Shown: positions 30,843 to 56,383, counted from the stretch's first letter. The stretch is DNA of 64,000 nt from Macrostomum hystrix (GCA_950097015.1 CATNEN010000034.1:1426001-1490000), one strand, 5' to 3'. Notes: generated by a model not told the origin, from the sequence alone. Program-made: numbers and translations.

Positions 30843-33800
30843 CTTTGTGTCCCCATCTTACTGCCTAAAACAAAATGCAATCGCAGACTTAACTTTATTA
30901 GAAGCTCACTCGTTGGAGTGGGTGCTAATGTCTATGGTAACTGTACAAGCCCGAACCAATGCCTTTGTACATGCAAGCTAACTATTTACTTATAGATGCT
31001 ATTGGCAAAAAAGCAACAGCCTTTAGTTTCATTTCACTCGACTTAATCGATTATATTGGATAATATTTTTCCTTTGACTTGCCACGCAATCACTCAAACA
31101 AGAATCAATACGCACGTGACTGTTTTGCACTGATGTGAACTTTTTTAGGCGATTTTAAAATACATTTTCGCATTAGATGCCAGATGCAGTTGTGAACAAA
31201 CTCTTTACTAGAACCACATTTTCTCAATCTCAACGCTTTGTGTAATATAGATCACGCAACTATGATGCACCAGACTGATCAATGCACGTCTTGCTTGCTT
31301 GTAGCAATTTTCTGTTGCTGTGTCTCGCCGTTTTCTACAATTGCATAGTCTGTAGTGGCACTTTTTCAAATTTGCTGCCTTTTATTATATATTTCTGTTC
31401 GATTGACAATGCATGTAGATTAATTTTCCCTTATTTTTAAGATGCCATGAGCAGGCCGTTTGAACACTGCTGGTTTGAGTGGCGTTAAGAATGGAAATTC
31501 TTATTTAGAATTGGCATTTCTGTTCAGTTTCTTTGTATACTATTTTCATTTCCCAATGCCTAGTGGCTCTCTGTCGCAATCGGACGGGAGACGGATTAAT
31601 GGGCGAATCAATGCACTCGGTGTACAGAATCTGTTGCATACAAAATTTTCTGCATGACCTCACTCTCACGATCTCATCTGCTTAGCTCAGGCTCTTATGC
31701 TTTGTTTTACTAGAAACAACTGGAAACTTTCAAGCTTTCTTATAGACGTTTCACGATTACGATCAAGCTCTGTCGCAAACTTGGAATGAACAAAATAACC
31801 AGACAACCCGATTAGGAAAAATCCGTCGGGTAAATATGAATAACAAATCAATCAGAGCCCATTTTAATCGACTATTTGCATGCGTTACGCACGTTTTTGC
31901 TACTCTACTTGCAGTAGAAGCACAAGCACAGGCTTGTCTTTTTTTAAACTTTGTAAAAAATCTTACAAGGCGTACCTTCTTGGAGGCTCTGTTGAGATTT
32001 TCATAGAAAACAAAATATCGAGCTTAGACTGTAAAATCCGCGTTTAATTTGCACTTTTCTGCTTTAAGAGCTTCTCACCTTTTTTGACACATTTTTTGAC
32101 TCTTGAAATCTATATTTTTAACCAGCGTCTTTTCTATTGTGCATTGTCTTGCTGGGAACAAATCTTAAACACCGAATTCGATGATCTCTTCGTCATGTGA
32201 TACGTTCGGCCAGCTAGCTAATTTTGTATATGCAGTTTGATCTAGACTCTTTGATTAGCAGCACTTGCCTGTTCCTTCAATGTGCTTTTTAGGAATTATC
32301 TTTTTAGGACCCAATGTCTGTGAGGCTGCTTGCATGCCTCTTGACTTCACGAGTCGGACAACGACTCTATATTACCAAATATAATTGGCCTTCGTGGTTT
32401 TGTCACTCCTTTATCTTGTTTTCTTTTCAGAACCTCACTCTGTCGCACAAACTATAGTTTCCCTCAAGTGTTCGTTATTTACACAAAAGTCTTATATGAT
32501 GAATCATGCTGACAGAAAAGTACAGAAAGCTGAAAACAAAACAGAAAATAAAAAACTGAGAGGCGAACAGAATCCGCTCGTATCCTATATGCCACAAAAA
32601 GCATCTTGGATCACATTAGAATTAAAGAATCAAGAACGACCAACTAAGTTTTTTTCGCACTCTGCCCATCAATAGACAACAGATGAAAAGTCTCCCTCAC
32701 TGCGTGTGCGCGTTTGGGGTGGGTATGTTCGACCGTAGTGGATATCGATTTTTCTATGGGTACATCATCAGCTTGCAAGAAAGTCTGGGAGTGGCCAGCC
32801 TAGGAGGGGTGGGTATCGATTTTTTATGGGCGTAGGCTGAGCGTCAGGGGAGAGAGAAGTAACAGCTTGGGTCCCTCTTCCTGAAAACTGTTGTCTATGG
32901 CAATTACAAGCGCAAAAGCAGCGCTGTTTAGAAGCTCCATCTATTCTAAAGTGACATTAGAGACCTTAACTGCAGAGGCGACGGCGACTGTTCGTCTTCT
33001 AGCACTTCAAAGTTTCTGTTTGGGAGCTGTTAGGTAAGTTGTGTTTTTTTTCTCTGAATAATTTGTATATTTTTAATATTTTTAATGTTATATTTATATT
33101 TTATGAGACACCACTGGCATGCATCTAAAAAATGAAATTAGCCACTCAGATGTCAAATTTACGCATGTAATCTCCCCCCTAGTGGTGGAAGGAGCTTCAT
33201 TTGTCAAATCCTAGCTAAAAGGCCTCAAATGATCCCATTATATCATAGTTAAATTCTTACTAAGTATACATTGAATAGCATGATGAATAAACTTAATATA
33301 AAGCGCTAATATATATTATCGCTTGTTGTCGGATCGTAAAGACTTTATCAAGAGAAGTAATTTATCGAAATTTTACTTCACGTTAGTGTGCTCTGATTAA
33401 TGACCGGTCATTAACTGTAAGACAAACTTCAATTTTAATTTAAAGGGCAAACCAGACAAACGAAGCCACAATTTATTTTAAATTAATTTAGGTAAAGTCC
33501 TATTAAGTCATATTAAGCTTCATATCATTAGCTGTCTTATTTATCAAACGAATTTGCATTCGGAGAAGGACAGAAGGTGCACTTGTTAAAGCTAAACTTC
33601 CCCATCGCCAGATTTTCCTGATTAACGCCGGTGATTTGCATGTTTGACACCACATTGACAAGCATTGCGCTACCCAATAACGCGCATGTGGGACGATCCC
33701 ATCCCACGCGCATGTGGGATGCGTGTTATTGTCACATTCTTTCTCTTATTATTTCTCGTTGTGTAATTTTGTGATTATCAAACGCCAACTTTTCAACATC

Positions 33801-33930
33801 TACCATAGACTATGGTGGAACTGCGAGTTTATTTTTCATATCAACGAGAAATCAACTTCAATGGTTAAGCAATGAACACTTTACAGTTTTTAGTTGTTTA
33901 TAGTTGCAATTCTCAATGACGCAGATGTCT

Positions 33931-35387
33931 CTAACCATTCAAGTTGAAAGTGCAGCCAGAGAAATGACAATCCGTGAAGATAGTTGAGACGTTCTGCCTA
34001 CTAAGTGTAATGTTCTGGTTACTCACGTCCATCAGTCCTAACCAATTCTGTGTTCGTACGAGAATCACTTGATTGCAAAGCTTCCCCCACAGTCGTAGCC
34101 ATGTCTCGCAGCGTGTGGTCACGTTTCCTCGATAGATACCGCCGAAATGTCGACTCAGATTGATGTCCCGTGATATTCATGATGTCGGACAGAGTATAGC
34201 CAGCTTCGTGTAGATCAGCCGTCCTAGTTACTCGAATGCAATGGTTCGTATACTTTTTGCTGAGCTCACACAGGGTGCTTAATCGAGTCATGAACGATCC
34301 TAACCAATTGATCCCACGAACCTGCTTAGTTGAAAACTGCAGCTGTCCTTCTTTATTTGCCATCGGTCTTGGAAAAAACGAATTGTCCTTGGTTTCGTTG
34401 GGCAGGACTTGAAGGTAGGTCTTAATGAGTTCATACTGACCGCCATAGATTCTCGCTTGCTTTGGGTTGAAACCTTTGGCCTTGACTGGATTGGCACTCT
34501 GGTTCTTGGTTCTGAGGTTAGGTAGCTCGTAATACTTCTTGCCGTCGCCGTCTTCTTTTTCTACGAGTATGTCTCTCTGACGAAGGTGTTGGAGGTGCTC
34601 TTGACCGCGCTCTCCCAAGACATACAATAAAGTGTAAATCACTTCATCCTGTAGTCGTTCTCCAGTCGAGCGATCAAAGTAACTGGACAACTTGGTTAGA
34701 TCGGCGCGCTCTATCGGTTCGTAACGCTTCACGCTCCCGCCTTTAGAATGAAAATCCCGCACCTTAACTCGAAGCATGCGATTGGCAGTAGCAAAGTTAG
34801 GATCATCGACGATGTTGAGTTCACGCATTGATAATGAAGTGAAAAAATCGCTGGATGCCGGCCCGAATGCAGACCAAGCTAGATGGCGAGTACGACTCTC
34901 CATTCGGTTTAGAAAGCCGAAAGTAGTAGAACCGCAGGTGCTCGTTGAGGCTACTGGGCTCCATTGTTTTGAGACTTTCAACAGGATGACCCAAGTCACT
35001 CATGTAGCTGGCAAACGCTTTGCCATAAAGGAACATTTGCTCCTTGGTCGATCTTGGTAGATAATCCACCTCGGCCTTGTCCATGACATCAGTAGCAACA
35101 GAAGCTCCATCCTCTTCACATTCCGGCAGATCGACACCAAGCAGTTCATCGTCAGATCGTGAATGATCGGTAATGAAGTTAATAAAGTCCTCCAGCTGAT
35201 TGTCATCTCGGTGATTGTCACTGCTCAGCTCCGCAATGAATGAGTATTCGCTGGATGAAACGCCATCGAGACTATCAACCGGCAGATGAGACCAATTGAT
35301 AAGATGCGTAGCGGTCATGTTTAAGGCAGGCAAGCGAAGACGGCTTAAAATGAAAAACTGAGAAGTCTTCGCTGTAACTTCGAACAT
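33931..35387 (-). pseudogene. YR1: Crypton/DUF3504-like tyrosine recombinase, full length, two frameshifts (~34845 in a T run and ~34050)
   Basis: Complete catalytic set: GERG (R), TKN (K), NHCIR (HxxR), TGH, RRY (Y). N-terminal core-binding region FYYFRLSKPNGESYSPSSL. C-tail FTDCHFSGCTFNLN lies in a shifted frame. Confidence 0.88.
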
Positions 35388-35432
35388 TTAAGACCAAAGT
35401 TTCTGACGAATTACCATAGACGGTATCTAAAT

Positions 35433-36345
35433 TTAGTCATGCATTATCAACCGTTTGATCTCCTGTAGGGCGACCGTCACCTCACGTCTCAGAATTCCCA
35501 TTCTCCGGGTGTGCAATGTGATGCCAAGGTTTGCTGCTGCAGCCGTATTGAGCAGTTCCGCACGAACTTCAGGCTGTGAGAGCAAGTGTCCGACGGCAGT
35601 CTTTAAGCAGGAGCCAGCCATTTCAGCCACATTTAAAAAGGGCGAGTATGGAGCCAGCTCTTTGGTGGAATGACCCAGGAACATTGTTGTGAGCGCGAGC
35701 GCCATCATGCACCAGAGTCCATGGTCCGTCCACTAGCTCATTTAACTGAAACAAAAATGCTGCGAAATGGCCGCTTGTGAATCCGCCATCCACCAGCGCA
35801 TGGTGTACCAGACCGCATTGGGGTGAAACCGCCAGACAAATTGTCAGGTTTCTCCCTCGTTGTCCGCTCGTAATCATCAGATTCCCTCCCATACCGTCAT
35901 TCAACATCCAACTCGCGAACTGCCACCGAGCCTCCTTCACCACGTCCGTGTTCCAGTTCACAGTAATCTGACGACTGGCCTTTAGAGTGATGAGCTGGCA
36001 GTCAAGCATCCGACTGAGCGTTGAAAGACTTGGTGCCTGTTGGCCAGGATTCTGAGCCTGTAGGTGGTCTCTCATGCTGGCAAGGGTGACATTGCCAGGG
36101 GTTTCTTCAATCAGAAGCTTCACACTGTCAATCAGATCTTTAGTAAGCAGCTTCGGTCGTCCGCCTCCTTGGGGTAGTCTCTCAACAAGTCCCTCTGCAG
36201 CATATCGTTCAATAATGCCCCTTGCCGTGCGCTTGTTGATTTCCAAGGTTTCAGCCAGCCGAATCCAATCTCTGCCTTCATCATACGATCGTGTCAGGCG
36301 CAATCTATCCGTCGTCGATACTGGCTTGTACGGTCCTCTCAGCAT
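35433..36345 (-). mobile_element. IS630/Tc1-like transposase, degraded (HTH domains and C-terminal D...E; first catalytic D region deleted; frameshift)
   Basis: HTH-like LAETLEINKRTARGIIERY...GGGRPK; LVHDGARAH; LAPYSPFLNVAE. Confidence 0.8.
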
Positions 36346-36654
36346 TTTGAAAACAGGATAGAGAAGGACTGCCGAATTTAAATTGCTGCGATTTTAGCAA
36401 CATATAGACACTTCACCAGTGCGAATTCAAATGCAATTTCGGCGAATTCAATCTCGACTTTTAGCTTAATTTCTATGAGCTTACTATTTTTAGACCACAT
36501 TGGCTTCTATGGGGAATTGTTTTGCAGTTTCGGCGAATTCAATTGCAAAAAGGTATAATTACGATATTAAAAAATTACAACCAGTATGAACGCATGGGGA
36601 GACTCCAAAGTTTGTCTCGTATAGTTATAGTCTGTCATAAATAGAAGACCTTGA

Positions 36655-36798
36655 TTACTCGAATACCATGTTGATCAAATTGTTGCTACCGTCAATGCTA
36701 ACACGCATCTTCTTGGTCGGACAGGCCTCGATGAGAACTGGCCGAGGAACAGGCCCGTCAATTGATGTTAGAGCGGCATCGCGACTGGTGATCGTCAT
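36655..36798 (-). pseudogene. C-terminal remnant of a YR5-type recombinase
   Basis: Manual translation MTITSRDAALTSIDGPVPRPVLIEACPTKKMRVSIDGSNNLINMVFE* matches the YR5 tail TKKMRIIADEDSNVVQFVFE*. Confidence 0.65.
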
Positions 36799-36996
36799 CA
36801 CTTGATCGTCATCACAGATTTTTGTTGTTTCGATGAGAGCTCACAGTTATATTTCACCACCAATTGTAACACGAACTGGAAAACATTTAAACAGCAACGC
36901 TTTAGATACACGATAATCTCACAGGTATAGTTACTTCGGGGTATAGTTACTTCGCACAGTTAGACGCGTCGACTGACGGTGCCGTTCTTGGACATA

Positions 36997-38468
36997 TTAC
37001 GGCCGGCCGGAAACGTGCACGTGAAATTCGCAGTGTTTGAACGTTCCAGATATGGCGGACGCCAGCATCTGCAGATCCATCCCATGCCGCACCATGGCAG
37101 GTTGCTGCTGCTGCACTACAACTCGCGCACCAGATTCCACCGTCTCCGACGCTACACACCGGGACTCGGCCGTGTCCGCAGCAGGCGCTCCCATTGCACT
37201 AATCTTGGTTGACAGCTCCGCCATTTCGGCGTCCCGCTTCCTGTTGCCACGAATGTACCTCGCGGTAGCGGTATCCGACTTATGTCCGGTGACCGCACCT
37301 ATGTCGTGAAGGGAAGCTCCAGACGCCTTCAGCTCGGTCGCGACAGTGACGCGTAGACACTGCCCGGTGTACTCCTTGCTCAGGTTGGCGGACTTGGATA
37401 TAACGCGCATCATATTTCCAAGTGTTAACCCCCACTACCTGCTTTGCGAAGTACCACGATCCGCTCAAACCGCGGACTCTAGGACGCAGGAACAGTTCGG
37501 AATTTGCCACTCCCTCCTCGCGCTTCGACTCCTTGATCTTCCGCAAGTACAGCTCGACACACTGGTATGGGCATCCGCTCTCACGAGTCTCGACCAGGAC
37601 ACTTTGCTTCCTATCCTCGGCCGACCTCGTTTCCAAGCTCCCGCGCACGTTTTTGGACTCCATTGAGGCCAACCGGAATGCACGCCGGCCATTGATGGTG
37701 CATCCGATCAGGGAATCTGTAGTCAACTTTCTGAACCATTCGCGACCCCGCAACCCGAAATGCACCGCAACTACATAGTTCTACATAGTTCTACATATAC
37801 ATCTCTTGCTGAAACTTCATCGGATCACTCCTATCGAAGTAGACGCGCAGCTTTACGAGGTCCACCGTCTCCAAGGCGCAGAATCGCATCACGGAGCCAC
37901 CTTCCTTGATGAACATTGCGGCCGTGGCCTTCAATTGCAGATTTGCCTTGGCGAAGTCTTTATCTTCGATGATATTGATTCTTCGGGTACGCATCAGATA
38001 TCTGAACACACCTGCACGCGCGGTAATCAATGAGGCCGGGGCATAGTACCCGCCATCTAGTTTGCGGATGAAGGCGTAGAAAATGCGCAGGGCGGTAACC
38101 ATCTGTTGAACACCTGCAGTCTCCAGATTGCACGGGTAGTTCTTCATTTGCAGCACCTCGTTAAATTTGCGCAAAGCCCAGTTCTCCTGCGTAAGAATGG
38201 ACCGCGGCGTGTTGTCCAGCTGCATCGTGCCCATCTCGTCCAGCAGGGCTTGCTCGGGGTCTCGGTTGCCTAACAGATCCTCGAACTCCGTCGCGTCCAG
38301 CTGCGCCAGGTCGTCAAGCATAACTTGCATAGCGGACTCCCGTTGGACTCGCTCGCCAACCTCGGAGTTAGACGCACCCACGACGTCACCTTGAGGCATG
38401 TGCACCAGTCCTAATGGAACGCCGGTACTTGCTTCGTAAATCGGATCTCCAGTCATCCTTGGGAACAT
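36997..38468 (-). pseudogene. YR2: Crypton-like tyrosine recombinase, full length, disrupted by a 10-bp tandem duplication (~37771-37797) and a frameshift (~37410)
   Basis: FYAFIRKLDGGYYAPASL, FDRSDP..FQQE, HFGLRGRE, SKN, CPY, FLRP, YTGQCLR, TGH, ARY; tail FKHCEFHV. Confidence 0.87.
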
Positions 38469-39499
38469 GGTTCTAGGCAGCCCGGTAATGCCACGGCTCG
38501 TCTCGCTGTCTTACAGCCTTCCCCAAACTGAGTTCTCTTGCTGCCCTAAGTCAGGCGGTCTACTTTTGGACCATAGACATTTCGGGCGTGACCAATCGAC
38601 AAAATAATCGATTGCTGCACGCCCCGCGAGACCGCTGGCTATATCCGCTCCGTGAGACTGATTGTTGCACGCCCCAACTGTCTTTGGTCCAAAAGTATAC
38701 AATGCCAGTGATAAACAGCTATTCGTACTGCAAAGTTTTAAACCTCGGGCGCTACGCGCCCTCGGTTAAAAACATTGCAGCACTCATAGCCGTTTATTAT
38801 TATATCATTGTTCTATGGCCCATCCGTATGCGCATGCTTTCAGTCGCCAATGTATACTCGTATCATATGTGACTTTTTAATAGGCAGTCAGAAGGCGGGT
38901 GCAGGGTCAGTTTTCTTAAATTTTGAATAGTTTTATTACATTATTATTATTTTATTATTATTATTATTAAGGTACGCATGCCGATTCGGTGCTGATTATT
39001 TGTTTATTTGATGTTTGAGGCTGAACAATTCGATTTTTAAAAAAGAAGGCGATAGGAAAACAGTAGCATGCATAAGATTAACTTTAGGTAAATGAAATAT
39101 TTGAAAAAAAACAAATTTTTGAAGTAAACAAAGGTATTAAAAAATGAAATATTGAAATTTAAAGAGAAAATTAAAACTGACTGTTTTTGTGCTCCCGAAA
39201 GTGTTTTTGTGTTTATTTGTGATTGTGTTTTTGCATTCTAACTATGGGCCTCAGGGCAGTGGCTTTTTTATCTAGCTTTAAGTATGCTTTCTATGAAGTC
39301 CACAAAACTTTCTGTTAAGTCTGTGCTTTCCTGTGTCATTAAATAAACCATTTTGTCATCAGCTGTTAGGCTTTCGAGATTTCGAACAGTACCTGCTACT
39401 TTCTCTATGAATTTATTTCTAATTGCAACATAAACGGACCAATCGCATCTAAAGAGAATATGAGTTTCGTTCTCTACCTCGACTTTACATTTTGGACAT

Positions 39500-40650
39500 T
39501 TCTGTGTTCATAGGCGATTTTCGGTCTTACAGTGCGTAATGCCTCACAGGCCAGTTTGTGCGCAATGTGTCGGGACATTGTGCGCCTTTGTTCTGGGTTA
39601 GAGATTATTGTTATGTACTTTTCTCTGGAGAAATCTTTCTTAAACGTGTAATAGAAGTGGAAGTACATAACGTCGTGAAAATGCACAATGGGAAAGCTGT
39701 ACATGCAGCACGTGTATAAGGAAACTCGAGAAAAATTTTCGATTCCTTCTTCATATGAAATGCAAACAGAGAGGAAAATAACAGTCACACAACGGGACAA
39801 GAGCTGACTATGATAAATTGTAAAGTGTTTGCTCCAGGTTCGCTCACTGTCCACTCAGCTTCAGTATTTTTCTATCGTGCACTTTATCAGGCGAAGGAGC
39901 GCTCTTTGTTCCTCGTTGAACATAACCCTTGAAGAAGCAGTTAGTGAGGCGCACGCAGCATCCCAGAACATCTGCTTCAGGGAAGTAAAACTCGCCAACG
40001 GCAGCAAAAAATTTCCGCACTCGCAAAGCACATGACGGTGATCGCAGCGAAATGAAGCATCCGAAACAGAGGCAAGCAAAATTGAACAGCCACTTTGTGG
40101 CGGGTGCTTCAACTTTCCACGGGAAATCATTTCAGTGAATTCACCGAGTGGGGTGTTTAAATTTTCGGCAGGATCTTCACCGGCAATTTTCTCCTTAAAC
40201 GTTATGTAGCCGGAAATGTTATTATTATGCCTCAGTTGTCCTTCACCTCAGCAATCGTTATTTCCATCCAAGTTCAAGTAACACAAATGCATGCCTTACC
40301 TGAAACATAATAAACAGATGCCTTTTCAGCAATTGATAGGCTCTCAGCTTTGACGTAGCAGTCATCGAGCGTCGAAAGTTCTTCGTCTGAAAGGGGCGTG
40401 TCGCAGCAAAGTCCTTTGTTGTGCACGAATCCATCCAGCTCTAACACTGTAGAGTTTCATTCGTCGGAGTCGCGTGCTGAGAAGAACTGGCTCTACTGAA
40501 ATAAAGTAATTGCCTCCGCTCATTTGGCGATAAACACCAAATTCTGCTTCCAGAGGATCACTTAGCAATTCCGCTATGAGAATGTACGTTGCACCAGATT
40601 CGCAGAGCAGTCGTTCGCATAGTTCTATGATTGCATGAATAGTGTAAGCT
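39500..40650 (-). mobile_element. 3' part of a P-element/THAP9-like transposase, degraded
   Basis: LAYTIHAIIELCERLL...YILIAELLSDPLEAEFGVYRQMSGGNYFIS (catalytic E region), ISGYITFK, SRGKLKHP. Confidence 0.72.
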
Positions 40651-40699
40651 AATGACCTCTTCGTCTCTGACGTCAGAGATTGGTGTCTTGTTCTTCCCT

Positions 40700-41281
40700 T
40701 CCCTCGCCCTCTTCGATCGGCTTATACTACTCGACGTCGCCTCCTTCTTGGTGAAACTTTCTAACCTGCACTCGAAGCATATCGTTTGCTGGCTGGAACT
40801 CTACACCGGTGATGCTGTTTACTTTCAATTTTAGAATTACACGCAGGTACCTCTGTATTCCTGCCTTATACAGACTAGAGAAGCAGGCGAATATGACTTT
40901 CCATCCTGCCGCTTCAATTTTAAGTAGAAGTACCTTAAGTACAGTTTCGGCCGGCACTTCTGAAACGTCTCTTAGTTTTTCACTCGCGAGGAAATTAAGG
41001 AAGCGTTCACCGTGAATGTACATCTGCTTCCTCGTTTCGGCAGGTAGGCTTTCAATTTCTACTCGATCCATCTCGCTAACATCAAGTTGCTCACCATCTA
41101 GGCACGGCAGTTCATTGTTAGAACGATCACTTTGAATGTAGTCAAGGAACGCGGCAGAGTCGTCGTCGCGTGGGTCGATGTTTGAAGTCTCGGAAATAAA
41201 GTTCAGTTCGAACGATTCGACATGGCCTAATTCGTTGATAGGCAGATTGCGCCAGTTGATTGGAAAATGAATGCCTTCCAT
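40700..41281 (-). pseudogene. YR3: 5' half of a YR1-family recombinase, truncated before the catalytic domain
   Basis: N-terminus INWRNLPINEL...SLPAETRKQMYIHGERF is homologous to YR1 INWSHLPVDSL...YLPRSTKEQMFLYGKAF. ANDMLRVQVRKFHQEGG matches ANRMLRVKVRDFHSKGG. Confidence 0.8.
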
Positions 41282-41774
41282 TCTATCGCGACTCTGAAAT
41301 TGATTATACTCACCCGATGAACAGCGACTCTTTAGAACTCCGTCGTCTTGACCATAGACATATCATTCTCTATGATTTCGTGTGTTCTGCTGTTGTCTGG
41401 AACTGAACTAACTGATTTTTTCTAACCCTTGGCTTTTACCATAGACGGACGGCAGATATCAATATCTGCCGTCCGTCCCCCACCCACTTTGATTTCTAAC
41501 CCCTAGCTGACAATTTGGACAATGATGGTTGTCTGGAATTGAGATTTCAGTTACGTTACGCGCTACGCACGCTCGTGCATATTTGAAGCAATGAAAAGTA
41601 CTTTAATACACTAATAAGAACCACAGACAAGATTTAAACCGAACAATTCAATACGTTTTGGTGGGAAATTCAAACGAATTCGAACAATGCGAAAATGGTC
41701 ATTTGCTTAGTAGGCAGCTCGGTAAATTTTCAGAATGTATTGTATACATTTTGCCAGTTTCAGCGACGTTCTAG

Positions 41775-42080
41775 TCACCGAGAATTGCCTGCCGAGCAAG
41801 GCAGCTCGTCAAACCTAAATTGCACGAGTGTTCTTCCGGCGCGGGCCTCTGCGGTCGGGTTGATGAAGCTATCCGCATTGGCAGCGATCTCTTGCTTGAT
41901 TGCCGCCTTCCAGTCGGGGATTGCGCTCTCAAACGGAGTCAGAAATGAGCTGCATTTTGGCAGCCTGCGAAATTCAATTGCGCCAACAGATTTCTGCAGT
42001 TCGGCGTCATTATGGCTGGATACATTATCGAAAATTATGTAGGCTGGATGCTGGATTTGAGAGTGCTCCAGGTTTCCCAT
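41775..42080 (-). mobile_element. IS630/Tc1-like transposase C-terminal fragment
   Basis: YIIFDNVSSH...RRLPKCSSFLTPFE (D...E motif). Confidence 0.7.
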
Positions 42081-42099
42081 GGTTATCTGCAGGAATTAA

Positions 42100-43250
42100 G
42101 CGAAATGCTCCTTCGTCATGCCCCTGTTGTAGCATTGGTTTGAGGCGACATGGCCATACACACCATCAGTTGGGGCCTCGCTGGCCTCCTATCACGCGAT
42201 AAGCACGAACTCCACGCTGCGCTCTCCCTTGTGATCGCCGATTCCACGTGTCGAAACCGAACTCATAATCGTAGATACATATCTTCGGCTGGTTGACGGC
42301 GTCTGCAGAGCAACACCATGTGGCGTAGGCAAAGCGTTCCTCAATAACTTCCGGAGCTTGCCACGGTTTAGCCAGGGATGCCACGGTTCTTGCGCACTGT
42401 GCCAGTGAGCAAGGTGTCCCGCTGCAGCAGCAGGCGACCAATCTTTGAGAAGTGAACCAGCTGTCCGTAAATACGTGGTAACCAAGATGAAGCAAATTTC
42501 GGCAAAGCGCAACTACAACTCTCTCGCTCATCGATAAATTCTGGCAGCCAAGTCCATCGCCAAAATGCTGATTGGCCTCAGCAGATGAGTGAATCTCAAA
42601 ATGCCACAAGTACGAGCTGGACTCATAGCTGGACTCGTAGCTGGACTCAGATTCGCAAAAGCAGTTATGATTTTATGCCATATCTATTCCTCTTCGTGGG
42701 AATTTACTGTTTGAACTGTAGTCTTCCTTTGTACAGAACAAGACTCTCATCAATCGAGAGCCGTTGACGCGGCATATAGATGGTTCTGCACAGCTCTTTC
42801 ACCTGCTGCAGAAAAGGATACATCTTAGCTAGAGGCCCAGCTGGATTTGGAATGTCCGTACAATCATAAAAGCGCAGGCAGGACAAAATCTGCTTGAACC
42901 TGTCTCTATATGGAGAGCACAATGGAAGACCGGTTCTTTTGACCAGAAGCTGGATATTTCTGGCTTTTATCAAGACCCATCAGAAGCGTGATTCCGATCA
43001 GTTTTCTCCCCTCGTCGACAGTGCAATCCTTCTAGTTAAGTACAAATTTGGGGACGGTTCCGTTATCTAAATTTTCATGGTACGTGTTCCATGCTTTTAA
43101 GTTCGTCCAAGTTTCAAGCAACTCGTCCGTCAAGTAGAGCTTGATGAAAGCAGTCTCATTTCCATCGGCCACTTCAGGTTGCTGCAACCCGGGCTGGACT
43201 CCAGGCACCCAAGAAACTCTACCAGTGGTGCTGGTCGAGAATCAGTGCCT
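42100..43250 (-). mobile_element. piggyBac-like transposase, fragmented
   Basis: RDRFKQILSCLRF, PRQRLSIDESLVLYKGRLQFKQ, LGYHVFTDSWFTS. Confidence 0.82.
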
Positions 43251-43846
43251 TCTTGAACAAGGTTCCAATTTCCGTCAGATTCGCCTTGATCTTCTTCTTC
43301 ATCACTGGAGAGCAGATCAGTAGATCAATCTACAGAATCATTATCGGCAGTAAACCAACTAGCATCTCAATGGCTATCAAAGTCTTCACTCATTTTCAGT
43401 TTCAGTTTCAAATAGAATATACAAAGAGGGACAGGGACAAGAGGAAACAGGTTGTGAATTTAATTTCCTTCATGTGTTTGAAATTATAAATATCTTTATG
43501 GTCAAACTTCATTCGATTTTTTTGTCTAATTGCCTTACATTTGGCTTCGAGCGTAAATCAGCGGATTGCCTTACTCCACTGACACTAGACAGTATAGTAT
43601 TCTTGTTTTGATTCTACATGAATTCATTTAAGCGTGCGGATATGCTTTCGTCTATGGTAAATCTTCATTTAAAATGTTAATTCTTTCAGTGCAGGAATGA
43701 ATTTTCATTTTGATTTTGATTTTGCGGGCAGGACTGCTTTAGGAACGGCCCAAGGACTTCTATATAATAGCATCTGGACTGGAAACGAGAAATAAATTTC
43801 ACAATTATTTTACCACATGAGGCCAATGTTTAGCCGAGCACAGCGG

Positions 43847-45506
43847 TTTAGCTGTTCTCCACCACCGCAGGTGAGGCCAGCCGGGAGCTGCGGCTGCAGC
43901 TGAACGACGCCCCCCTCGCGACGGACCGCCAGCCCCGGTTTCTCGGCGTCATCCTGGACCGCCTGCTGAGCTTCACCGCGCACGCCGCCAACGTCGCAGG
44001 CCGCGCCCGCGCCCGGTGCGGCGTCCTGGCCGCGCTCTCCGGTAGCAGCTGGGGCGCCAAGCAGACCGACGTACGCCGGCTCTACACTGCCTACGTGCGG
44101 CCGGTGCTGGAGTACGCGGCCGGCGCCTGGATGCCGTCGGCCTGCAAGACGGCCATTGAGCAGCTGGACCGAGCCCAGCGCCTGTGCGCGCGCGTCATCA
44201 CCGGGTGCCCTCGGAACACCAGGTCGGAGGTGCTAGAACGAGAGGCCGGCCTGCCCCCGATGGCGGTCCGCGCCGAGATGCACGCCGGCCTTCTCCTCGA
44301 GCGCGCCCTCAGGCTCCCGCCCGACAACCCGCTGCTCGCCTGCGCGGCCGCCGAGGGCCCATGCCGCCGCCTCCAGAGCGCCCGAGGCTGGCGGGAAACG
44401 GCGACCAGAGTCAGCACCGACGCGGGCCTGAGCGACTACCCGCGCGAGCCCGTTTGCGCTGTCCCCGCGACGCCTCCCTGGGCCAACCTGGACACCGTCA
44501 CCTTTGGTCTGCAGCTGTCCGCCCCCTTCTCCCGGTGCGACCCGCCTGAGGCACGGAGAGCGGCGGCTGAGCTAACGCTGGCAGGCCTGCCGCCCGCCCG
44601 CACGGCCATCTGGACTGACGGAGCGGCAAAGGATGGCGTCTCGGCCGGCGGCAGCGGCGCCCTGGTCGAGCCCGACACGGCACTGTGCGTCCCAGCCGGC
44701 CACGTGACGTCCAGCTTACACGCTGAGCTGGTGGCCATCGCCGAGGCCCTCCAGTGGGTGTTGGCGGCACCGGACCCGGCCGAGCTGTCGCCGGTCCGCG
44801 TGTGCTCGGACTCCCTGAGTGCGCTGGCGGCGCTCGAGTCCGGCCCCGGCTCGACGGGCGTCACCACTGCCGATGCCATCTGGGCCAGCCTCTCCCACCT
44901 CGCAGCCGGAGGCGTCGCTGTCCACCTGCAGTGGGTCCCGGGCCACGCGGGCATCCCTGGCAACGAGGCGGTCGATGCCATTGCCAAGCGCGGCTCCGCG
45001 CTGCCGCAGGCTGAGGCCCACATCCCGCTGGCTGCGGCCCAGGCCGCCATTCGCCGCCACTGCCTCGCCCGCTGGCACCAGCTGTACCGCGCGGCGGCCG
45101 CCGACGCTGCGGGCACGAGCTCGCTGCCCTGGCACGCCGCCTGCACCTCGGGCCACCTGCCGCCTCCTCCGCCGACTGACCTCTCGCGGCGGCACGAGCG
45201 GCTGATCTGCCAGCTGTGCGCCGACCGCTGCCATGCCCTCCGGGGCTTCCAGGCCGCGATTGGCGCCCCGGTGGCCCCCACCTGCCGACTCTGGGGCGAG
45301 GGCGACGAGACGGCGACCCACGTGCTCCTCGCCTGCCCCGCCCTGACCGCCCACCGCTGCCGCCTCTGGGGCCCCTGCCCGGAGCCCGGGCAGGTCTTTG
45401 ATTGCTGTGCTTCCGTGCTGGCCCTGCTTGGGAAGGCGGGCATCATCTGATGCCCGGTGCCATGGGCCCTGGCCCGCGCACGCCCGAAGAAGAAGAAGAA
45501 GAAGAA
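43847..45506 (+). mobile_element. 5'-truncated non-LTR retrotransposon (I-group/Ingi-like: RT thumb, RNase H, degenerate zinc knuckle) with (GAA)7 tail and GCACAGCGG TSD
   Basis: Open frame from ~43850 (PRFLGVILDRLLSF...YVRPVLEY) through RNase H (IWTDGA, AELVAI, CSDSLSAL, QWVPGH.GI.GNE.VD) to stop 45450. Tail 45486-45506. (A)GCACAGCGG occurs at 43837-43846 and 45506-45515. Confidence 0.92.
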
Positions 45507-45861
45507 GCACAGCGGCTCTCCAGAGAAACATATCTACTTAAGCCGTCACACATCTCAAGGCGCCTACATTCCAGGCATGCACATTGAATTTGGTGGAAAT
45601 CCTATGTTGTGGAGAGAAATGGAGTCTACTTTTTTCGGAGAAGCATTTCCAATTGATTTCAATGGCGTTTCAAATTGGCATTCCATCGGTCCCCAGCTGT
45701 TCACCATAGACACTTGTTCCAGAACTGCCACGACTTATGGCCACGTAGTGGCACTAATTTGAATTGGATCAGATTTCCTAGTTGTTTCATTTCATACTCA
45801 ACGCAGTTTCCTCAGTTTTCTTTGTCAAGGATTTCTGCGCCATAAAAGCATATCCTTCACT

Positions 45862-46625
45862 ATGGTGAACAAGTGTTCCGCATTCGGTTGCAAGAGCGGC
45901 TTCGCTAATAGTTCAACGCCAGGTACTGTGACATTTCATTGCTATCCACTCAACAACCCGAGTCTATTGAAAAAATGGAATAAAGCAAATCCGAGGAAGG
46001 CGTTTCAGCCCACGAAGTATTCTCGTATCTGCTCGCTTCATTTCACCACTGAGGACTTCGTCGAAACAACTCGAGATAGCAATAGCACTCGCAGAGAGAA
46101 GATAAAGGCCAGGTGACCAATCGTTATCTGAGGCAAGATGCGGTGCCAACTATCTTTCTTAATGCACCTGCATACCTTTCTTCTGTCCGGCAAGCAGCTC
46201 GGAGCACATGCTCTGCGACATCATCTGCGCGTCTGGAGGCTGAAAACATGCGTCTCAATGATCAAATCGCCGACTTCTTTGCCAAAGATTCAATTATCAG
46301 TTGCTCGCCACGAGAAATTCAAGAATTGCTCGAATCAGAGGAAACGAGACCAGATGGCTTTCTATGTGGCCAATCGAATTGAGTACTGTGGAGGCCAAGT
46401 GAGTGGATTGGACAATAATGGAGTGGTTGCTTCAACCTACTGTTGCTTCTTGATAAAGTCAATTGCAGGCAAGTACAAAGACATGGTGTCCATGTTTCCT
46501 CTGGCAAAGCTGACAGCACAGAAGCTCAGTCACTGGTTCTAGGATGTCATGGATTTGCTGCGTAGCCTGCAGTTCTCCGTCATTGCAATATCCGTTGATA
46601 ATGCACCAGTTAACAGAAAGTTCGT
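45862..46625 (+). mobile_element. 5' part of a THAP-domain P-element-like transposase, frameshifted and truncated
   Basis: THAP: MVNKCSAFGC...FH.YP...W...P...RICSLHF...LRQDAVPTIF. Then CFLIKSIAGKYKDMVSMFP and SVDNAPVNRKF. Confidence 0.82.
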
Positions 46626-47069
46626 CGCCGATTTTAACTCAGAACTCGATTTTAAACATAAATTAATAATCTGAAGAAAGGAACTAGCCAGTTAACATTA
46701 CATCTCTGGATTTCCGACATTTGAATTTCCGATCTTGCATTTCCCAATTTGACAGATTCCATAGAAAGCAGGGGAAAAACTGGCCTCATGAGGTAATGGG
46801 TATTTCTTCGCTTCCAGTCCAGATGCTATTATATAGAAGTCCTTGAACGGCCCATCCTATGCCCGCTGTCGGTCTGGGCCATAGACATATGGAATGAAAG
46901 CAAAAACAAATATATTTAATGGAGTACGGCAGCGCATAAAAGTACAACAGTAATGACAAGAGCAGTAACAATAATAACAAACAGGGGAGATGAAACAACA
47001 CACAATTAGCCACACCCATAGTCCAAGTAGTCATAGACAGACTGTGTTAAATGTAATTTCTCTGTCCGA

Positions 47070-47114
47070 ACCACAGATACTATAATAATCAACAGTTATT
47101 ATAGTATCTGTGGT
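47070..47114. other. Perfect 19-bp inverted repeat with 7-bp spacer
   Basis: ACCACAGATACTATAATAA-TCAACAG-TTATTATAGTATCTGTGGT, 27 bp beyond the YR4 stop. Confidence 0.92.
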
Positions 47115-47140
47115 CCGAACCGGCAAGAGATCAGAGACAC

Positions 47141-48700
47141 TCACAGGAAGAATAACAGGCGACTACCATTCTTTTCTAGTACAGCAGTCGGCAGAACTCC
47201 ATGAATGTCACTAGTACGCTGCTCGCAATCCATGGTAGCCACTTTGATAGTGCTCGATGTAAGTCCTACGCTCGGACCAGACGATGGAGATGTGACATAG
47301 CTCGTGGCTTGTTCAACGATCAAACCAGATGATGGCGAAGCAATGGTCAGAGCGTCTGACAGTTGCCGTTTCTTTGTTGGCGAGATCCGTTTTGTCTACC
47401 TCTGGATTGACTCTGGTCTTTTGTGACCAGTAACACATTGGATGTCGCCGACTGCAATGCCTTTGTTTGATAATGTCGTGACGACAGTAGCACGAATGCA
47501 ATGATTTGTGTACTTGCGTGATAGATTCGCCCTTGTAGAGATCCGAACCATCATGTCGTTCAGGGTGTTCTTACCGAGAACTTGAGTTGCGCTGTACCAC
47601 TGTTCCTTAGATAATTTCGCCAACGGCCTTGGAAACAAATCACTCACACCAGGAGGCAGCAAGGTTAAATAAAGGCGCACTGCGGCAACAGGACACGTTG
47701 ATGGGTTATTGGTGGCATACATCTTAATCTGCTTTCCCGTACATGGGTTGGCAGCATTAGTTGTCTTCTCTTTACCGGACATGACCAAGTCGATGCAGGC
47801 AGTCCCAGCCTCCTCAGAGAAGACAATAGCGTCCTTCGTCAGCTGGCGAAGCCACTCGCGTCCTCTGAAGTTAAAATGCGTACACAACTTGTAGAAAACC
47901 TCATCTTGTAGTTTCACTGGCGTAGTTCGATCAAAGTACGATCCGAGCTTCACAACATCCTCGTCGGTGATGGCTTGAAAGCCGCTCTGCTCTTTAACGT
48001 GTCTGTTCCGTTTCACGGATGCGGCTAGAGTAGCTTTGTAGGTCTTGTCAAACTTCTGAAAGGCTACATTGCCAATCACTTCCAAATCCCTCACCTCTTT
48101 AAAGTGACGATGGAGGCTGGCACGAAAGCCTGCCAACGTGCTGACGCTGTAGGCATCTCCGTCTGCCCTTCGTAGGGATGCAAATCATAAGCGCATGTAC
48201 TCAACAAGATGCCTTAGAGGCATGCTGTCAATACAATCAGGAAGATTCTCCTTGCGCAAAAATGTCCTAAATTTCTCCACACACTGTCTTGTTTTGGCAT
48301 CTGTAGAGGCTACGCGAGAGGCCGTCTCCACGTCTAAAATCGCACCCACTTCTTCAGGCGATAACTCCCTGAGTTGATTATCACTGTTCGCTTCGGCGGC
48401 CAAATCGGATACAAGGGCGTCCAAAACGCCGTTGTCCAACGCACGACTGTGTCCAATTCCAGGTACAGGCAGGCCGGTGTATTGGTTAAACAATCGTCCA
48501 CGGCCACGCAGTTGACACACAAAGTCGATCTCCTCGCGCTCCAGACCGTTAATCTCTCCTCCCTCTATACAGGAGTAGTCTATCATGTGTATGCGTTCTA
48601 TAACTAGAATGAACTGGAGTGACACGTAAGCTGGAATGAAAACGATATTTCTGTCTGGCTGTTCTATCTGACAAGAGAGATGATTCTCTATCGAACTCAA
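47141..48700 (-). pseudogene. YR4: Crypton-like tyrosine recombinase, single reading frame with two in-frame stops (48185-48187; 47396-47398)
   Basis: YMRL*FASLRRADGDAYSVSTL, FDRTTPVKLQDEVF, FNFRGRE, CPV, LFPRP, YTNHCIR, TGH, SIQR* followed by an in-frame tail to ...SRLLFFL*. The true start may lie downstream of 48700. Confidence 0.88.
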
Positions 48701-49144
48701 AGGCTTTTCTGGAACTGTATTCTAGAAATTTGTCTATGGTTAATAGTGGGGGCTCTGCCCCCACACCCCGTCAAGGGAGCAGAAGGCTTTTCTTCCATAG
48801 AATATCATTTTCTAGCGGGCCAAGAAACGTGACTTGTTCTTCGTTTCCGTTCAAACCAATGCAGTTTGCGTCGCGGGCCGAGGAATAACGTTTCTCGGCC
48901 CGCCCTTAGAATCAAGAAGGAATACTAATCCTTCACGCTGTCTAGGGCAGAAAGGACAGCGTGCCCTATAAAGCCTGAAGGATTCATATATTCCTGCACG
49001 GTAATAGACAGAATTGTATTTTAATAAGAACAAACAAGTGACACAAAATGAGAAATATTGACAAAGAAGAGTAACAACAGTAACGTATTAAAGCAATGGA
49101 ACACTCAAACAGACAATAGCTCGTAGATCAATTTCGATCCTTAT

Positions 49145-50676
49145 CTACTCGAAAACGAACTGCACCACGTTGGAATCCTCATCAGCGATGATCCTCATCT
49201 TCTTTGTTGACGCCAACGTAGTCGGCTCGCTTGTTAACAGCACTTCAGACTGCACCGCACTCCGAATGCCGACCGATGAAGTCTCAGAGCCAGTTCCGTC
49301 AAGAGCAATAGTCAATTGTTCACTCATACCCGCCATTATAGTGCCTCTTCGTTTTCCACGTCGAATATACCGTTCGACGGATGTACTCGACTGAAATTTT
49401 CACATAAACGTAAGAATAATTCTATCAGATGCAATGTGCAAGCTTTGCTAAGTTGTGTAAACACAGTGTAACGGTTTTCAGCTTACCTTGTGCCCCGTCA
49501 CTTTAGCGATGGTTTCTACGGCGTATCCAGCCTCGTGAAGTTCTGTAACAACGGTCGCTCTTACACAGTGACCTGTGTACGGCTTCGAAAGATTTGCCTT
49601 TTCAGATATCGTCTCCATCAGCGGCCCTAAGGTGTTGATACCAACAGCTTGCTTGGTGTACCAGATTCCGTTTGGTCCAACCTGTTGCTTCGGCCGAAGA
49701 AAGAAATCGGTGCCGTTCCAGTCGGGAACTGCAGCAATTTTCGATAGATACAGTTTGAAGGCCTCAACAGGGCAGCATTTTGATCCTGGCTTAGCAACCA
49801 TAGGAGCCTCCTTGTTGTCATCACAGTCGCGAATATCCACCGATCCCTTCACATTCTTAGAAGTGCTGCTTTGTAGCTTGATCGCCGTCATGCCGTTCGC
49901 AAGGACCGTCTCGCTGAACGAATTCGCAGTCAGGCCACGCAACCATTCACGGCCACGATTGCCATAGTAGAAGATCATATTGAAATACTGCAGACGGGCT
50001 GGTGTGCTTCGGTCAAAATAGCTGGCCAAGTTCATCAGATCATCGGATTCAATCGCATCGTAGTGCCGAATTCGTCCTCCCGATTTTAGGTACGCATTAC
50101 ACACATGCTTTACCATCAAGTTCGCAGCGTGAAAGGCTGGCTCGGCAATAATATTTAGTCCGCGCAGCTTCATAAAGTAGCGATACAACCCGACAATGGT
50201 GTCAGGAGAATAAAATCCTCCATTGGGTTTACGCTGCGAAGCATAGAAGTATCGAATCCAGCGTGCGAGTTCTTCAACAGAGACGTTCTTGAAGTCAAGA
50301 TGCAAATTGCAGCTCTCAAGCCAGTCGGTAAGACGCTTGATAATGGCCTTCTCCTTGGAAACGCTTGTTCGGCACTCATTGTCTCGTTCCAATTGGTTCG
50401 CGAGATGATCCGTCGAGATGGTTCGTCGAGCGTAGCCAGCGATTCGGGATCCGCAGATATCAGCTTGGCCAGCTCATCATCGAAGTTGACATCTGCTACC
50501 AAAGCTGTCAGTTCGTCGACAACTCTCTCTAGCTTGCTAGATGTGCCAGCTACGAGTAGAACCATCTCCTTTTTACTAACTCCACACACAGACACGTAGC
50601 GCAGGTCTATCAATGGACCAACCAAATTTTTGTCACTCCGAGTGGCCGTGGTTGATTTCAATTTTCTAAATAACAA
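49145..50676 (-). pseudogene. YR5: Crypton-like tyrosine recombinase with a 96-bp intron (49391-49486), a frameshift (~50400) and small in-frame deletions
   Basis: FYASQRKPNGGFYSP, FDRSTP, GNRGRE, SKN, CPV, FFLRP, YTGHCVR, TGHK|SSTSVERY joined by a GTAAGC...TTTCAG intron. Confidence 0.88.
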
Positions 50677-51223
50677 ACACTCTTATCACTACGTAACTAA
50701 CACCAGCCATTCTTCTTCTTCTTCTTCATTCTGCTTGCAGGATTGCTTTTGTCTGTGGTAAAAATCCTCGTGAATTCTGTTGAAACAGTTTTTGTCTATG
50801 CTAAATGTATTTTTCATGTGGGGGCTCGGCCCCCAGCCCCCGCAAGGGGACTGCGTCCCCTTAACCCCGCTTCCCGCTGCACCTCCCTTCCACTCTAATT
50901 GATCCAACAAGAATAATATTCCAGTACGAAAACTCTTTTCTTATAAAATCCGATTTCGTCGTTAATGGACGTTTAATGGGCGCATTCTAAGGCACGAATC
51001 TATCGTCTATGGTTGGAAATGCGAAGTCTTGAACCAGTGTGCCATATAATGGTCCCGAAAACGGGGGCCCATTAAGCCGTATAATGGGCGCCAAATAATG
51101 GGCCGCAAATTATTTATTGACGCGAAACGTTTCAAACATGTTTAAACAAGTAGAATAAGCGACAACTAAGTAGTTAATAGTCAGTGGCAGTAACGGTCAA
51201 TACCCAGCGTGAGGTAAACATCG

Positions 51224-51667
51224 TTAGTCGAATTTGATCTCGATCCTGCCACCCTCGATGACAAGAGACTTGACCCCGTGGCCAGCAGTGGACTTACCGG
51301 AGTTTCGGCCAGGCTCCGCTACAGCAGGTTGCCCGCTTGATGGACCACTGACGTTCGTCGGACGACTGGAGTCCTGCAAAGCGTCGGAAGCAATCCTCGC
51401 AACCTTGGCCGATGGGCCTATGTAGCGTTCAAGCGCAGCGGAACTGTGACCAGTAACCTTGGCAATCTCAGGCCTCGACATCCCAACATCACGCAATGTT
51501 GTGGCACATGTCTTCCGCAGGGACTGATTGCTGTAGCAACCAGTGGTCGGCTCAGGTAGACCGTCCATCAGCGTCCGCACTACAGAGTCGAGAGTGTGTC
51601 GCCCGAGAACCTGGTTCTGGAACCACTTCCCAGCACTAACAGCAGCTTCACTGCGAAACCAGGACAA
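51224..51667 (-). pseudogene. YR6: C-terminal catalytic fragment of a divergent tyrosine recombinase
   Basis: WFQNQVLGRHTL...YSNQSLRKT...TGHSSAALERY; tail IEIKFD*. Confidence 0.8.
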
Positions 51668-51826
51668 AAATAGGGCTATGGTGGAGTTCCGTTCGTTATA
51701 TTATTTTGCAATTTGAAATGACTGCGGACAGGTTAAACAAGTTTTACGACCAACGCAGCAACATTTAAACAACACGAGGACACTCAGAAAAGTTCATCAG
51801 AGGTTCATCAGTTCCTTATCTGTTCA

Positions 51827-52245
51827 TCAAGTTGGATAATAGTGGGACACCCAATACATGAAGTTGCCGAATGCATTGACTGGGTATAGACGGCGCCACA
51901 TGTACTCCTGCAGATGTGACTCAAATAGTGCATCCGATGTGCCATGCATCTGTCGCAGCCTGGCCTTGGCATGTGCCCAGGTGCCCTCCATGGTGTTGGT
52001 GTGAACACTTGGGTCTTGCGGATTTACGAAGTTAAGCCGATGGTTCACAGAGGCATGTCCATAGCCACGTGCTGCAAGGCCGTTGTAGGCAAGCCACCCA
52101 TCCGTGATGACTCGTGTGCCCGGCAGGATGTACTGTTGCAAAATGGGCAGCATAGTTTCTGCGCGACGATCTGGTACAATAACCATCATACATTTGTTGC
52201 TCTGGCGTTCAACCATCCCGAGCACCCAGTGGCCCTCGCGGTATA
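51827..52245 (-). mobile_element. Merlin/IS1595 (ISXO2-like) DDE transposase C-terminal part, in frame with YR7
   Basis: WVLGMVER...DRRAETMLPILQQYILPGTRVITDGWLAY...VNHRLNFV.P...HTNTMEGTW...HLQEYMWRR. Confidence 0.88.
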
Positions 52246-52905
52246 AACACAAATCGACGATGTTGGAGTCGCCATGTGCCCGAATCTTCAAACTCTTGGA
52301 CCCGCGGCCAACATACTCCGACGTGACACAGTTGGCTTGTGCAGAAACCGACACCGATACATTGGAGCTGCCTGACGCCGTTGCGACCTCGGATTGCCCT
52401 TCGATACCAGGGCTCAGAGCTGTTGTCAAGTGGCCACTCATCTTTGTGATTTCGGAGTCTCGCTTTCTACCGCGGTGGATGTAGCGCTGCACTGACGCGA
52501 CATTCTTGTGGCCGGTGACCTTTGCGATACTCTCCAGGTTGAAGCCACCTTCGTGAAGCTCCATCACCACAGTTGCACGAATACTGTGAGGCGTGTAAAC
52601 CTTTGACAATCCGGCGTTAGTTGAGATAGTCTTTAACATTAGTCCAAGCGTGTTGACACCCAGAGGAGTCTTGTAGTACCAAACGCCGTCCGCAGCACCG
52701 GCCATCTTTGGTCGTAGGAAGAAATCTTTGTAGAAGATTGCAGTTGCTAGTTGCTAGAACCGGGCAGTTGCTAGCGCCAGGCTTGGAAACCATTTCGGCT
52801 TCCTTGTTGTCATCGCACTTCTACAGATCGGTGGAGCCCTGGACGTTCTTACTGGCACCTTGTTGGAAGCAAATGGAGATACGACCATTGGCCAGCTCTC
52901 TCTCT
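52246..52905 (-). pseudogene. YR7: 3' half of a YR5-family recombinase
   Basis: ELANG...SKNVQGS, CDDNKEA, CPV, DFFLRPK, YTPHSIR, TGHKNVASVQRY; tail LKIRAHGDSNIVD. One stop and one deletion with filler. Confidence 0.87.

Positions 52906-56344: not shown

Positions 56345-56383
<39 letters not shown>

Follow-up and report, generated by a model that had tools for sequence, protein, structure and literature searches.

Broken Crypton-like tyrosine recombinase elements of separate lineages lie in one orientation within an intergenic gap of Macrostomum hystrix

Cryptons are DNA transposons whose sole gene encodes a tyrosine recombinase (YR). They were reportedly described by Goodwin et al. in 2003, and the CryptonA group is the one cited for comparison here. 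According to Kojima and Jurka (2011), no terminal repeats were found in animal Cryptons, TATGG occurs at the termini of CryptonS elements, and MarCry-1_FO is a Crypton fused with a mariner-type transposon (PMC3212892). In the flatworm Macrostomum lignano, 436 Piwi-interacting RNA (piRNA) clusters with a median length of 9.7 kb have been reported, some of which are unidirectional (PMC4604429). Here, we describe an array of broken Crypton-like elements in a stretch of 64,000 nt from Macrostomum hystrix (hereafter the window, with positions counted from its first letter), and consider how elements of separate lineages could have come to lie there in one orientation. A literature search found no paper on many Crypton lineages piled up in this way.

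We scanned all six frames of the window with a YR profile hidden Markov model (HMM) built from 17 full-length relatives, together with tblastn searches. YR homology was found from 34.0 to 52.9 kb on the minus strand only, in seven units (YR1 to YR7; Table 1), and an eighth piece, a C-terminal tail remnant directly downstream of YR2, was added by tblastn with C-terminal queries (E 0.002–0.003, ending exactly at the stop codon, with a weak HMM match to profile positions 430–460). The location of all eight pieces on one strand has a two-sided chance probability of P = 0.008. No ninth piece was found in a further profile search of the window, the six-frame scan detected no further YR fragments in its remaining 45 kb, and none were found in the ~140 kb flanking eight Cryptons of M. 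lignano. Because YR fragments are absent from the rest of the window and from these flanks, the clustering at the array is far above background and non-random, and the M. lignano flanks argue that it is specific to YR elements. The first-pass annotation of this DNA had proposed a head-to-tail array of at least seven, and up to nine, YR genes at 33537–52905, all on the minus strand and including two C-terminal remnants. The strand was borne out, as were the seven units and the remnant at 36.7 kb; the ninth piece was not recovered, none of the pieces is an intact gene, and the head-to-tail order applies to the succession of YR6, YR5 and YR4, other transposon fragments being present between units.

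In Pfam searches, the units matched DUF3504 and Phage_integrase, the two families that the first-pass annotation had named for an HMM check, and the profile alignment shows all or nearly all of the catalytic R, K, HxxR, H and Y positions; the units are therefore Crypton-type recombinases and not domesticated DUF3504 genes. The full catalytic set is found in YR1 and YR5. YR7 keeps K, HxxR, H and Y without the box-I Arg region, and in YR2 and YR6 the first His of HxxR is replaced by Gln. As expected of Cryptons, no reverse transcriptase (RT), RNase H or methyltransferase was found in the elements, and the M. lignano relatives are single-gene elements of 1.9–2.0 kb. Pfam scans of neighbouring open reading frames (ORFs) detected no RT beside any unit, which rules out DIRS or Ngaro retroelements, and the sole RNase H belongs to a GC-rich long interspersed nuclear element (LINE) on the other strand. 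All eight YR pieces are inactivated by a frameshift, a nonsense codon or truncation, some of the frameshifts being possible assembly errors.

Copies of several units were found outside the array. Compared with the intact copy on Logan contig L006, which contains a 495-aa ORF (P0031), YR1 is frameshifted once, near 34838, and has lost 29 bp close to the stop codon. This contig is 99.7% identical to window positions 35456–33727 and then diverges, and so appears to lie at another locus; the 41-nt tail beyond the divergence point has no occurrence in the window. The right end of YR1 was inferred at 33727 (...GTGACAATA) and its left end was not placed. We further aligned Logan contigs of the same organism over positions 46900–52900 for depth, differences and breaks. 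The contig covering YR4 (47137–48935) has a depth of 355, compared with 75 for the YR5 unit, and differs from the window by C>G at 47396 and T>C at 48185. These differences fall on two stop codons of the window copy, an in-frame TGA (48185–48187) and a TAG exactly at the catalytic Tyr codon (47396–47398), where the multicopy majority reads TGG and TAC, so that the family is probably still active elsewhere. YR5 is covered by contigs 48915–50776 (depth 75, no differences from the window) and 50747–50971; it keeps a conserved 93-nt GT..AG intron that is also present in M. lignano, and carries one 8-nt frameshift near 50412. The YR5 unit is matched at 49199–50816, with ~90–95% identity, by contigs derived from RNA of another species (organism D), in which a close relative of this Crypton is therefore transcribed. 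In the region of YR6, contig depths are 370 and 3000–5000, and contigs of both organism A and organism B have loose ends at 50943 and 51670. Since other copies run on past 51670, YR6 is 5'-truncated at this position. Its last ~200 nt (50943–51138) form a very high-copy terminal repeat with CCATAGAC at 51005, at 40–70 times the depth of the neighbouring low-copy sequence both in the window organism and in organism B, and this repeat probably represents a right end that the YR6 family shares with its non-autonomous derivatives. Dispersed copies, the mark of mobile elements, are thus represented by the diverging YR1 copy, by the depth of YR4 and by the P0001 family of M. lignano, which occupies at least five loci at ~99.5% identity, and two of the families, YR1 and YR4, are judged to be young, with intact or multicopy relatives elsewhere. 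No unit-skipping joints that would indicate gain or loss of whole units between samples were seen in the aligned contigs, the other samples being at low depth.

Pairwise identity among the units was 18–37%, apart from YR5 and YR7 (51%). Six of the seven units (all but YR6) are closer to a protein from outside the window; for example, YR1 is 97–99% identical to P0031, YR5 67–71% to M. lignano P0001 at the protein level, YR3 45–46% to P0034 and P0037, and YR4 46% to P0012. In a FastTree phylogeny, the units were scattered over at least four clades. The identity table and the tree agree with the subfamilies drawn in the first-pass annotation (YR1 with YR3; YR5 with YR7 and the 36.7-kb remnant; YR2, YR4 and YR6 apart) and with its rejection of a recent tandem duplication, given that the copies do not form one local clade. 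These relationships indicate independent insertions of separate Crypton lineages and not local duplication, because most units are nearest to outside proteins and the tree disperses them.

The ends of the elements were examined in eight insertions of two families (P0001 and P0003) in M. lignano, a related species, distinct from the source of the window, whose proteins are the closest public matches to those of the window. Within a family, the M. lignano copies are 99.3–99.6% identical over 1.75–2.0 kb and have sharp boundaries, with right ends reading ...GTCAAACGACAATG in P0001 and ...ATCAAATAAGAATG in P0003. Across the eight insertions, the right end reads ...AATG and the left flank ends in A(A/T)TG or WTGTA, and short direct repeats matching the target occur without long terminal or inverted repeats. 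One insertion, L003, lies in a satellite whose uninterrupted unit, GGGGATTGTA directly followed by CACTCG, represents the empty site. Sharp ends, left-flank repeats and this empty site together indicate that the crossover uses an AATG-type microhomology of ~4 bp. The AATG-type repeats are the classic Crypton signature, that of a circle junction that would recombine with short microhomology in the target, and one that Kojima and Jurka did not find in animal Cryptons (PMC3212892). The ends of the M. lignano elements, which are ~2 kb long, are fixed; CCATAGAC is subterminal, and repeated sites specific to each family occur near both ends. In the P0001-family element at L001 (NIVC01001476), a lox/dif-like perfect inverted repeat, CGTGCAGGAAT-GAAGTC-ATTCCTGCACG, is located at 11727–11755, ~100 bp inside the right end, and five or six direct copies of ATTCCTGCACG occur near both ends; the inverted repeat and the direct copies are candidate recombinase-binding sites. 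Seven of the eight insertions are in non-Crypton DNA, so that homing is not the rule, and none of the eight has another YR fragment within 10 kb. One of the eight, L004, is placed directly on a resident right-end-like sequence ending in CCGACAATG, in the same orientation.

Among the units of the window, end positions were obtained at 33727, 48928, ~50927 and 50943 only. YR6, YR5 and YR4 follow in succession, with junctions within ~25 bp of the inferred ends. At the junction of YR5 and YR4, the left end of YR4 (TTAGTATTCC..., at 48928) coincides with the overlap of the YR5 and YR4 contigs (48915–48935), inside the right terminal region of YR5. This left end, which begins TTAGTATTCCTTCTTG..., resembles the left end of the P0003 family (TTAGGATTCTTG...); the right end of YR4 was not placed. 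At the junction of YR6 and YR5, the YR6 family's high-copy terminal repeat stops at 50943, ~16 bp before the left end of YR5 inferred near 50927 (ATATTATTCTTG...). Both junctions (48928 and 50927–50943) coincide with breaks in the assembly graph and with end homology. A pattern in which the left end of a newcomer abuts the right end of a resident fits YR6>YR5, YR5>YR4 and L004, and does not fit YR1.

The sequence CCATAGAC occurs 19 times in the window, compared with 1.4 copies expected, and is a real motif. A role for it as a shared, regenerated att site is not supported. The motif is subterminal: at the right end it is found ~73 nt inward, and on the left 8 nt inside the inner (short-form) junction, itself ~110 nt inward of the full left end. 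Its copies in the array occur in both orientations (seven plus, three minus), and in M. lignano repeat DNA generally it occurs at 0.3–0.6 per kb, including in a 50-bp satellite. As the crossover site it is ruled out, because it lies inside the ends and the empty L003 unit does not contain it. Only one copy falls in the ~40 kb of genic sequence of the window, compared with 18 in the repeat-rich parts, and a host promoter motif is unlikely. A literature search on the motif returned nothing relevant. The related claim that different YR elements had integrated at a shared site is supported for the independence of the lineages; a shared site is not supported for the array as a whole, in which only two junctions abut.

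YR1 has a palindromic motif ACCATAGTCTATGGT at 33803–33817 and GTCTATGGT at 35413–35421, an inverted pair of motif-bearing 33-nt arms (38558–38590 and 38668–38700) is located upstream of YR2, and motifs at 41352 and 41439 lie upstream of the YR3 ATG. Of four elements with TTAG-type left ends, three (L002, L008 and YR4 of the window) lie 2–25 bp downstream of a CCATAGAC copy with a single mismatch. A 'GC hairpin + CCATAGAC' module is present upstream of YR4 (48702–48809) and of M. lignano P0032 and P0028, and in degenerate form in the left region of YR5; the YR4 module (48712–48780) and the P0032 module (L007 9851–9921) are 90% identical over 71 nt. The module consists of a GC hairpin (GGGGGCAGAGCCCCC) plus CCATAGACAA..TAGAATACAGTTC, adjoins recombinase genes of different families and is also found at L008 9839–9913, where the hairpin part is an extra insertion of ~75 bp relative to L002. 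After YR4, a palindrome at 47064–47120 has 25-nt arms, which hold a motif-like GGACCACAGATAC, and a 7-nt spacer; one contig of the same organism skips 49 nt there (47063 to 47113). The 50-bp tandem repeat at L001 20854–21597, each unit of which reads ...AGAATG-N13-CCATAGAC, looks like a satellite of minimal Crypton-end-like units. In the window, positions 21020–21747 hold six CCATAGAC sites in 730 bp with no recombinase gene near. Five of these sites point the same way, and between the members of one pair lie a hairpin and ...GCATTG directly followed by TTGGGCCATAGAC, which resembles an element junction.

We propose, with a probability of about 0.5, that the locus is an accumulation of decaying, independently inserted elements from at least seven Crypton lineages, with end-directed accretion as a main contributor. 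A resident right end would carry the same core and the recombinase-binding sites, and would therefore serve as a preferred secondary attachment site, as attR does for the tandem integration of prophages and of integrative and conjugative elements (ICEs). Newcomers landing there would keep the orientation of the resident, so that short head-to-tail trains would form, represented in the array by YR6>YR5>YR4 and by YR2>tail remnant, which later insertions of other transposons and deletions would have broken up. Attachment at resident right ends would account for the trains, for the excess of YR elements and for the orientation that they share, a proposition for which we see the chances as evenly balanced. 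More tentatively, Macrostomum Cryptons of many families may share the subterminal CCATAGAC and the AATG core and may recombine preferentially into each other's ends.

Several observations weigh against end-directed accretion. Only two junctions abut, and YR1 lies beside a Tc1-like remnant, not beside a Crypton end. The seven M. lignano insertions in non-Crypton DNA are singletons, which makes end-directed insertion a minority outcome. No plus-strand YR is found beside the plus-oriented copies of the motif, and the upstream motif of the YR1/YR3 clade runs in the opposite direction to the gene. The two junctions were themselves inferred from weak homology and from contig overlaps of 21 nt, and no read-derived contig bridges them. 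Finally, a mechanism specific to YR elements does not predict that four of the five or six non-YR insertions should share the minus strand, as they do.

The array sits in a transposon-rich intergenic gap of ~24 kb (~30.7–54.7 kb) between two convergent host genes, a Frizzled receptor gene, whose 3' end points into the transposon island, and an unnamed gene. A position within an intron of a plus-strand host gene, which would bias insertions toward the antisense orientation, is ruled out, since Frizzled ends with its stop codon and the next gene is on the minus strand; the array is therefore not intronic. The gap contains dead or truncated pieces of at least 12 transposon families from six superfamilies, and 12 of 13 insertions are on the minus strand, including four of five non-YR insertions (the LINE nested in the THAP element was counted with that insertion). 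Fragments of many families in one orientation, one of the features of a unidirectional piRNA cluster, are thus present at the array. The array is not a clean head-to-tail series, as the YR units are interspersed with five or six fragments of other transposons. The Tc1/mariner-like remnant next to YR1 ends 15 bp from the upstream motif of that unit; no 3' inverted repeat was recognisable for it, and an exact-protein look-up of its ORF returned no match. A composite Tc1 plus Crypton element similar to MarCry was rejected, as no enclosing inverted repeats were found and no similarity was detected between the two Tc1-like pieces. The THAP element is inserted in the hairpin loop of a 'hairpin + CCATAGAC' module and carries a GC-rich (66%), 5'-truncated LINE with an RNase H ORF at 43852–45447. 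YR7 and an IS1595-type DDE domain occur in one ORF because two broken repeats happen to abut; a fusion protein was ruled out by the contig breaks and loose ends at 52243–52267, where two unrelated broken repeats meet.

Table 1. Positions of the recombinase pieces, the other transposon fragments and the flanking host genes in the window
Feature	Position	Strand	Details
YR1 unit	33727-35434	-	Near full length, profile 5-417; YR homology 34022-35387; ORF pieces 34022-34999 and 34824-35387
YR piece 8, C-terminal tail remnant	36658-36789	-	P0001/YR5/YR7 type; ...KKMRVSIDGSNNLINMVFE; peptide ends ...NMVFE
YR2 unit	36997-38468	-	Full length, profile 7-459; split by two frameshifts
YR3	40703-41362	-	N-terminal 40% only, profile 18-186; YR1 clade
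YR4 unit	46900-48928	-	YR homology 47264-48700, profile 7-428; ~5 genomic copies
YR5 unit	48929-50927	-	YR homology 49148-50676; full length, profile 4-460; low-copy
YR6 fragment	50943-51670	-	C-terminal coding part 51224-51667, profile 317-409, plus 3' region
YR7	52247-52913	-	C-terminal half only, profile 239-458; 51% identical to YR5
Tc1/mariner-like transposase remnant	35436-36393	-	Helix-turn-helix region and C-terminal DDE part, one frameshift; Pfam HTH_32/HTH_29
Tc1-like DDE_3 fragment	41778-42095	-	Pfam
piggyBac transposase fragments	42169-42672 and 42707-42979	-	Pfam
THAP-domain DNA transposon (THAP/P-like)	43751-46845	+	38-nt terminal inverted repeats, 97% complementary; 7-bp AACGGCC target duplication
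High-copy repeat fragment	51671-51891	-	
IS1595/Merlin-like DDE fragment	~51892-52243	-	Pfam DDE_Tnp_IS1595
Frizzled receptor gene	27485-30664	+	Cysteine-rich domain and seven-helix region; stop codon at 30664
Next host gene, unnamed	54727-57077	-	

The composition of the gap raises the possibility, which we consider real if rather doubtful, that the interval is a one-strand piRNA cluster or a similar trap, on which transposons of all kinds landed at random. Copies antisense to a long plus-strand precursor, possibly a read-through transcript of Frizzled, would then have been retained for silencing small RNAs, and their orientation would reflect selection and not recombinase chemistry. An intergenic stretch filled with dead pieces of many superfamilies, nearly all on one strand whether or not they encode a YR, is what such a trap would produce; it would also explain the patchwork of truncations and the breakage of every YR copy although the family is intact elsewhere, and unidirectional clusters are known from M. 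lignano. However, only 0.63% of the M. lignano genome is covered by clusters, YR elements are enriched at the array compared with other transposons, the THAP element with its LINE has the plus orientation, and two junctions lie at element ends and not at random positions. The last point also makes it unlikely that the shared orientation arose by chance in an ordinary repeat-rich intergenic island that was singled out as striking among many windows, as does the lack of any other YR in the rest of the window or in the M. lignano flanks. Yet the strand bias of the eight pieces is not extreme given the thousands of windows screened, and a motif near the units is weak evidence because it is common throughout Macrostomum repeat DNA.

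We do not think that the locus is a dedicated capture platform. In a true integron-like system, a resident recombinase and a primary attachment site would capture circles serially at one end of the array, and the single orientation of the units, together with the recurrence of the 'hairpin + CCATAGAC' module upstream of YR4, YR5, P0032 and P0028, could be read in that way. We hold this to be very improbable, since there is neither an intact recombinase nor an attI-like platform, each unit encodes its own recombinase and not cargo, the crossover does not take place at the motif, and no single junction sequence is shared: two junctions abut within 25 bp or less, and at the others 0.5–5.5 kb of other transposon fragments intervene. 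The integron analogy of the first-pass annotation is not supported on the same grounds, every supposed cassette having a recombinase of its own. An old local tandem duplication of one recombinase gene, followed by divergence, would place pieces close together in one orientation as well, but we give it almost no credence; the low identity between units and the closer relationship of six of the seven to proteins of other loci or species speak against it, and pseudogenes would not stay recognisable over such divergence.

The locus and its M. lignano relatives bear on the movement of animal Cryptons in several ways. They provide exact ends, a conserved subterminal signal and, in the form of ...AATG joined to the left end, a candidate circle junction, and they hint that resident ends attract newcomers, which makes a circle-and-recombine mechanism directly testable in a culturable, transgenic-capable flatworm. 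If end-directed insertion is general, it would explain oriented arrays of recombinase elements in a eukaryote and would be a source of motif-bearing satellites. If, beyond this, a signal is shared among families, oriented multi-family Crypton trains would be expected at many loci as a eukaryotic counterpart of tandem ICE and prophage accretion, and mini-units and satellites that bear the motif would be by-products. If the trap model is true, the locus would illustrate well how a one-strand piRNA cluster looks in an animal that is neither an arthropod nor a vertebrate.

Compared with described systems, the array resembles MarCry-1_FO in that Tc1/mariner-like remnants lie upstream of YR1 (directly) and of YR3 in the same orientation, although P0032 has no Tc1-like neighbour and, as noted, the pieces are dissimilar and not enclosed by inverted repeats. 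With bacterial integrons it shares a tyrosine recombinase, oriented units and hairpin-containing sequences near junctions; however, it has no platform integrase, attI or promoter, and its units are selfish, recombinase-encoding and dead, not promoterless cargo. Like unidirectional piRNA clusters (flamenco of Drosophila and those of M. lignano), it is intergenic and consists of dead fragments of many families in nearly one orientation, but it is rich in YR elements and has two junctions at element ends. The tandem accretion of prophages, ICEs and genomic islands at attL or attR is also similar, in that a circle with its own YR uses the end of a resident relative and thereby forms a co-oriented head-to-tail array. 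The present array differs in being eukaryotic and in that only two junctions fit; moreover, most insertions go elsewhere, because the core is only ~4 bp. The units resemble Cryptons, in particular CryptonA, in that each has a single YR gene with a DUF3504/Phage_integrase catalytic region and lacks RT, long terminal repeats and terminal inverted repeats, and the 4-bp direct repeats of the M. lignano relatives reflect target microhomology. Unlike in the animal Cryptons surveyed by Kojima and Jurka, the ends here are sharply delimited and bear AATG-type repeats; they also have repeated sites specific to each family and a conserved subterminal CCATAGAC, within which TATGG is contained.

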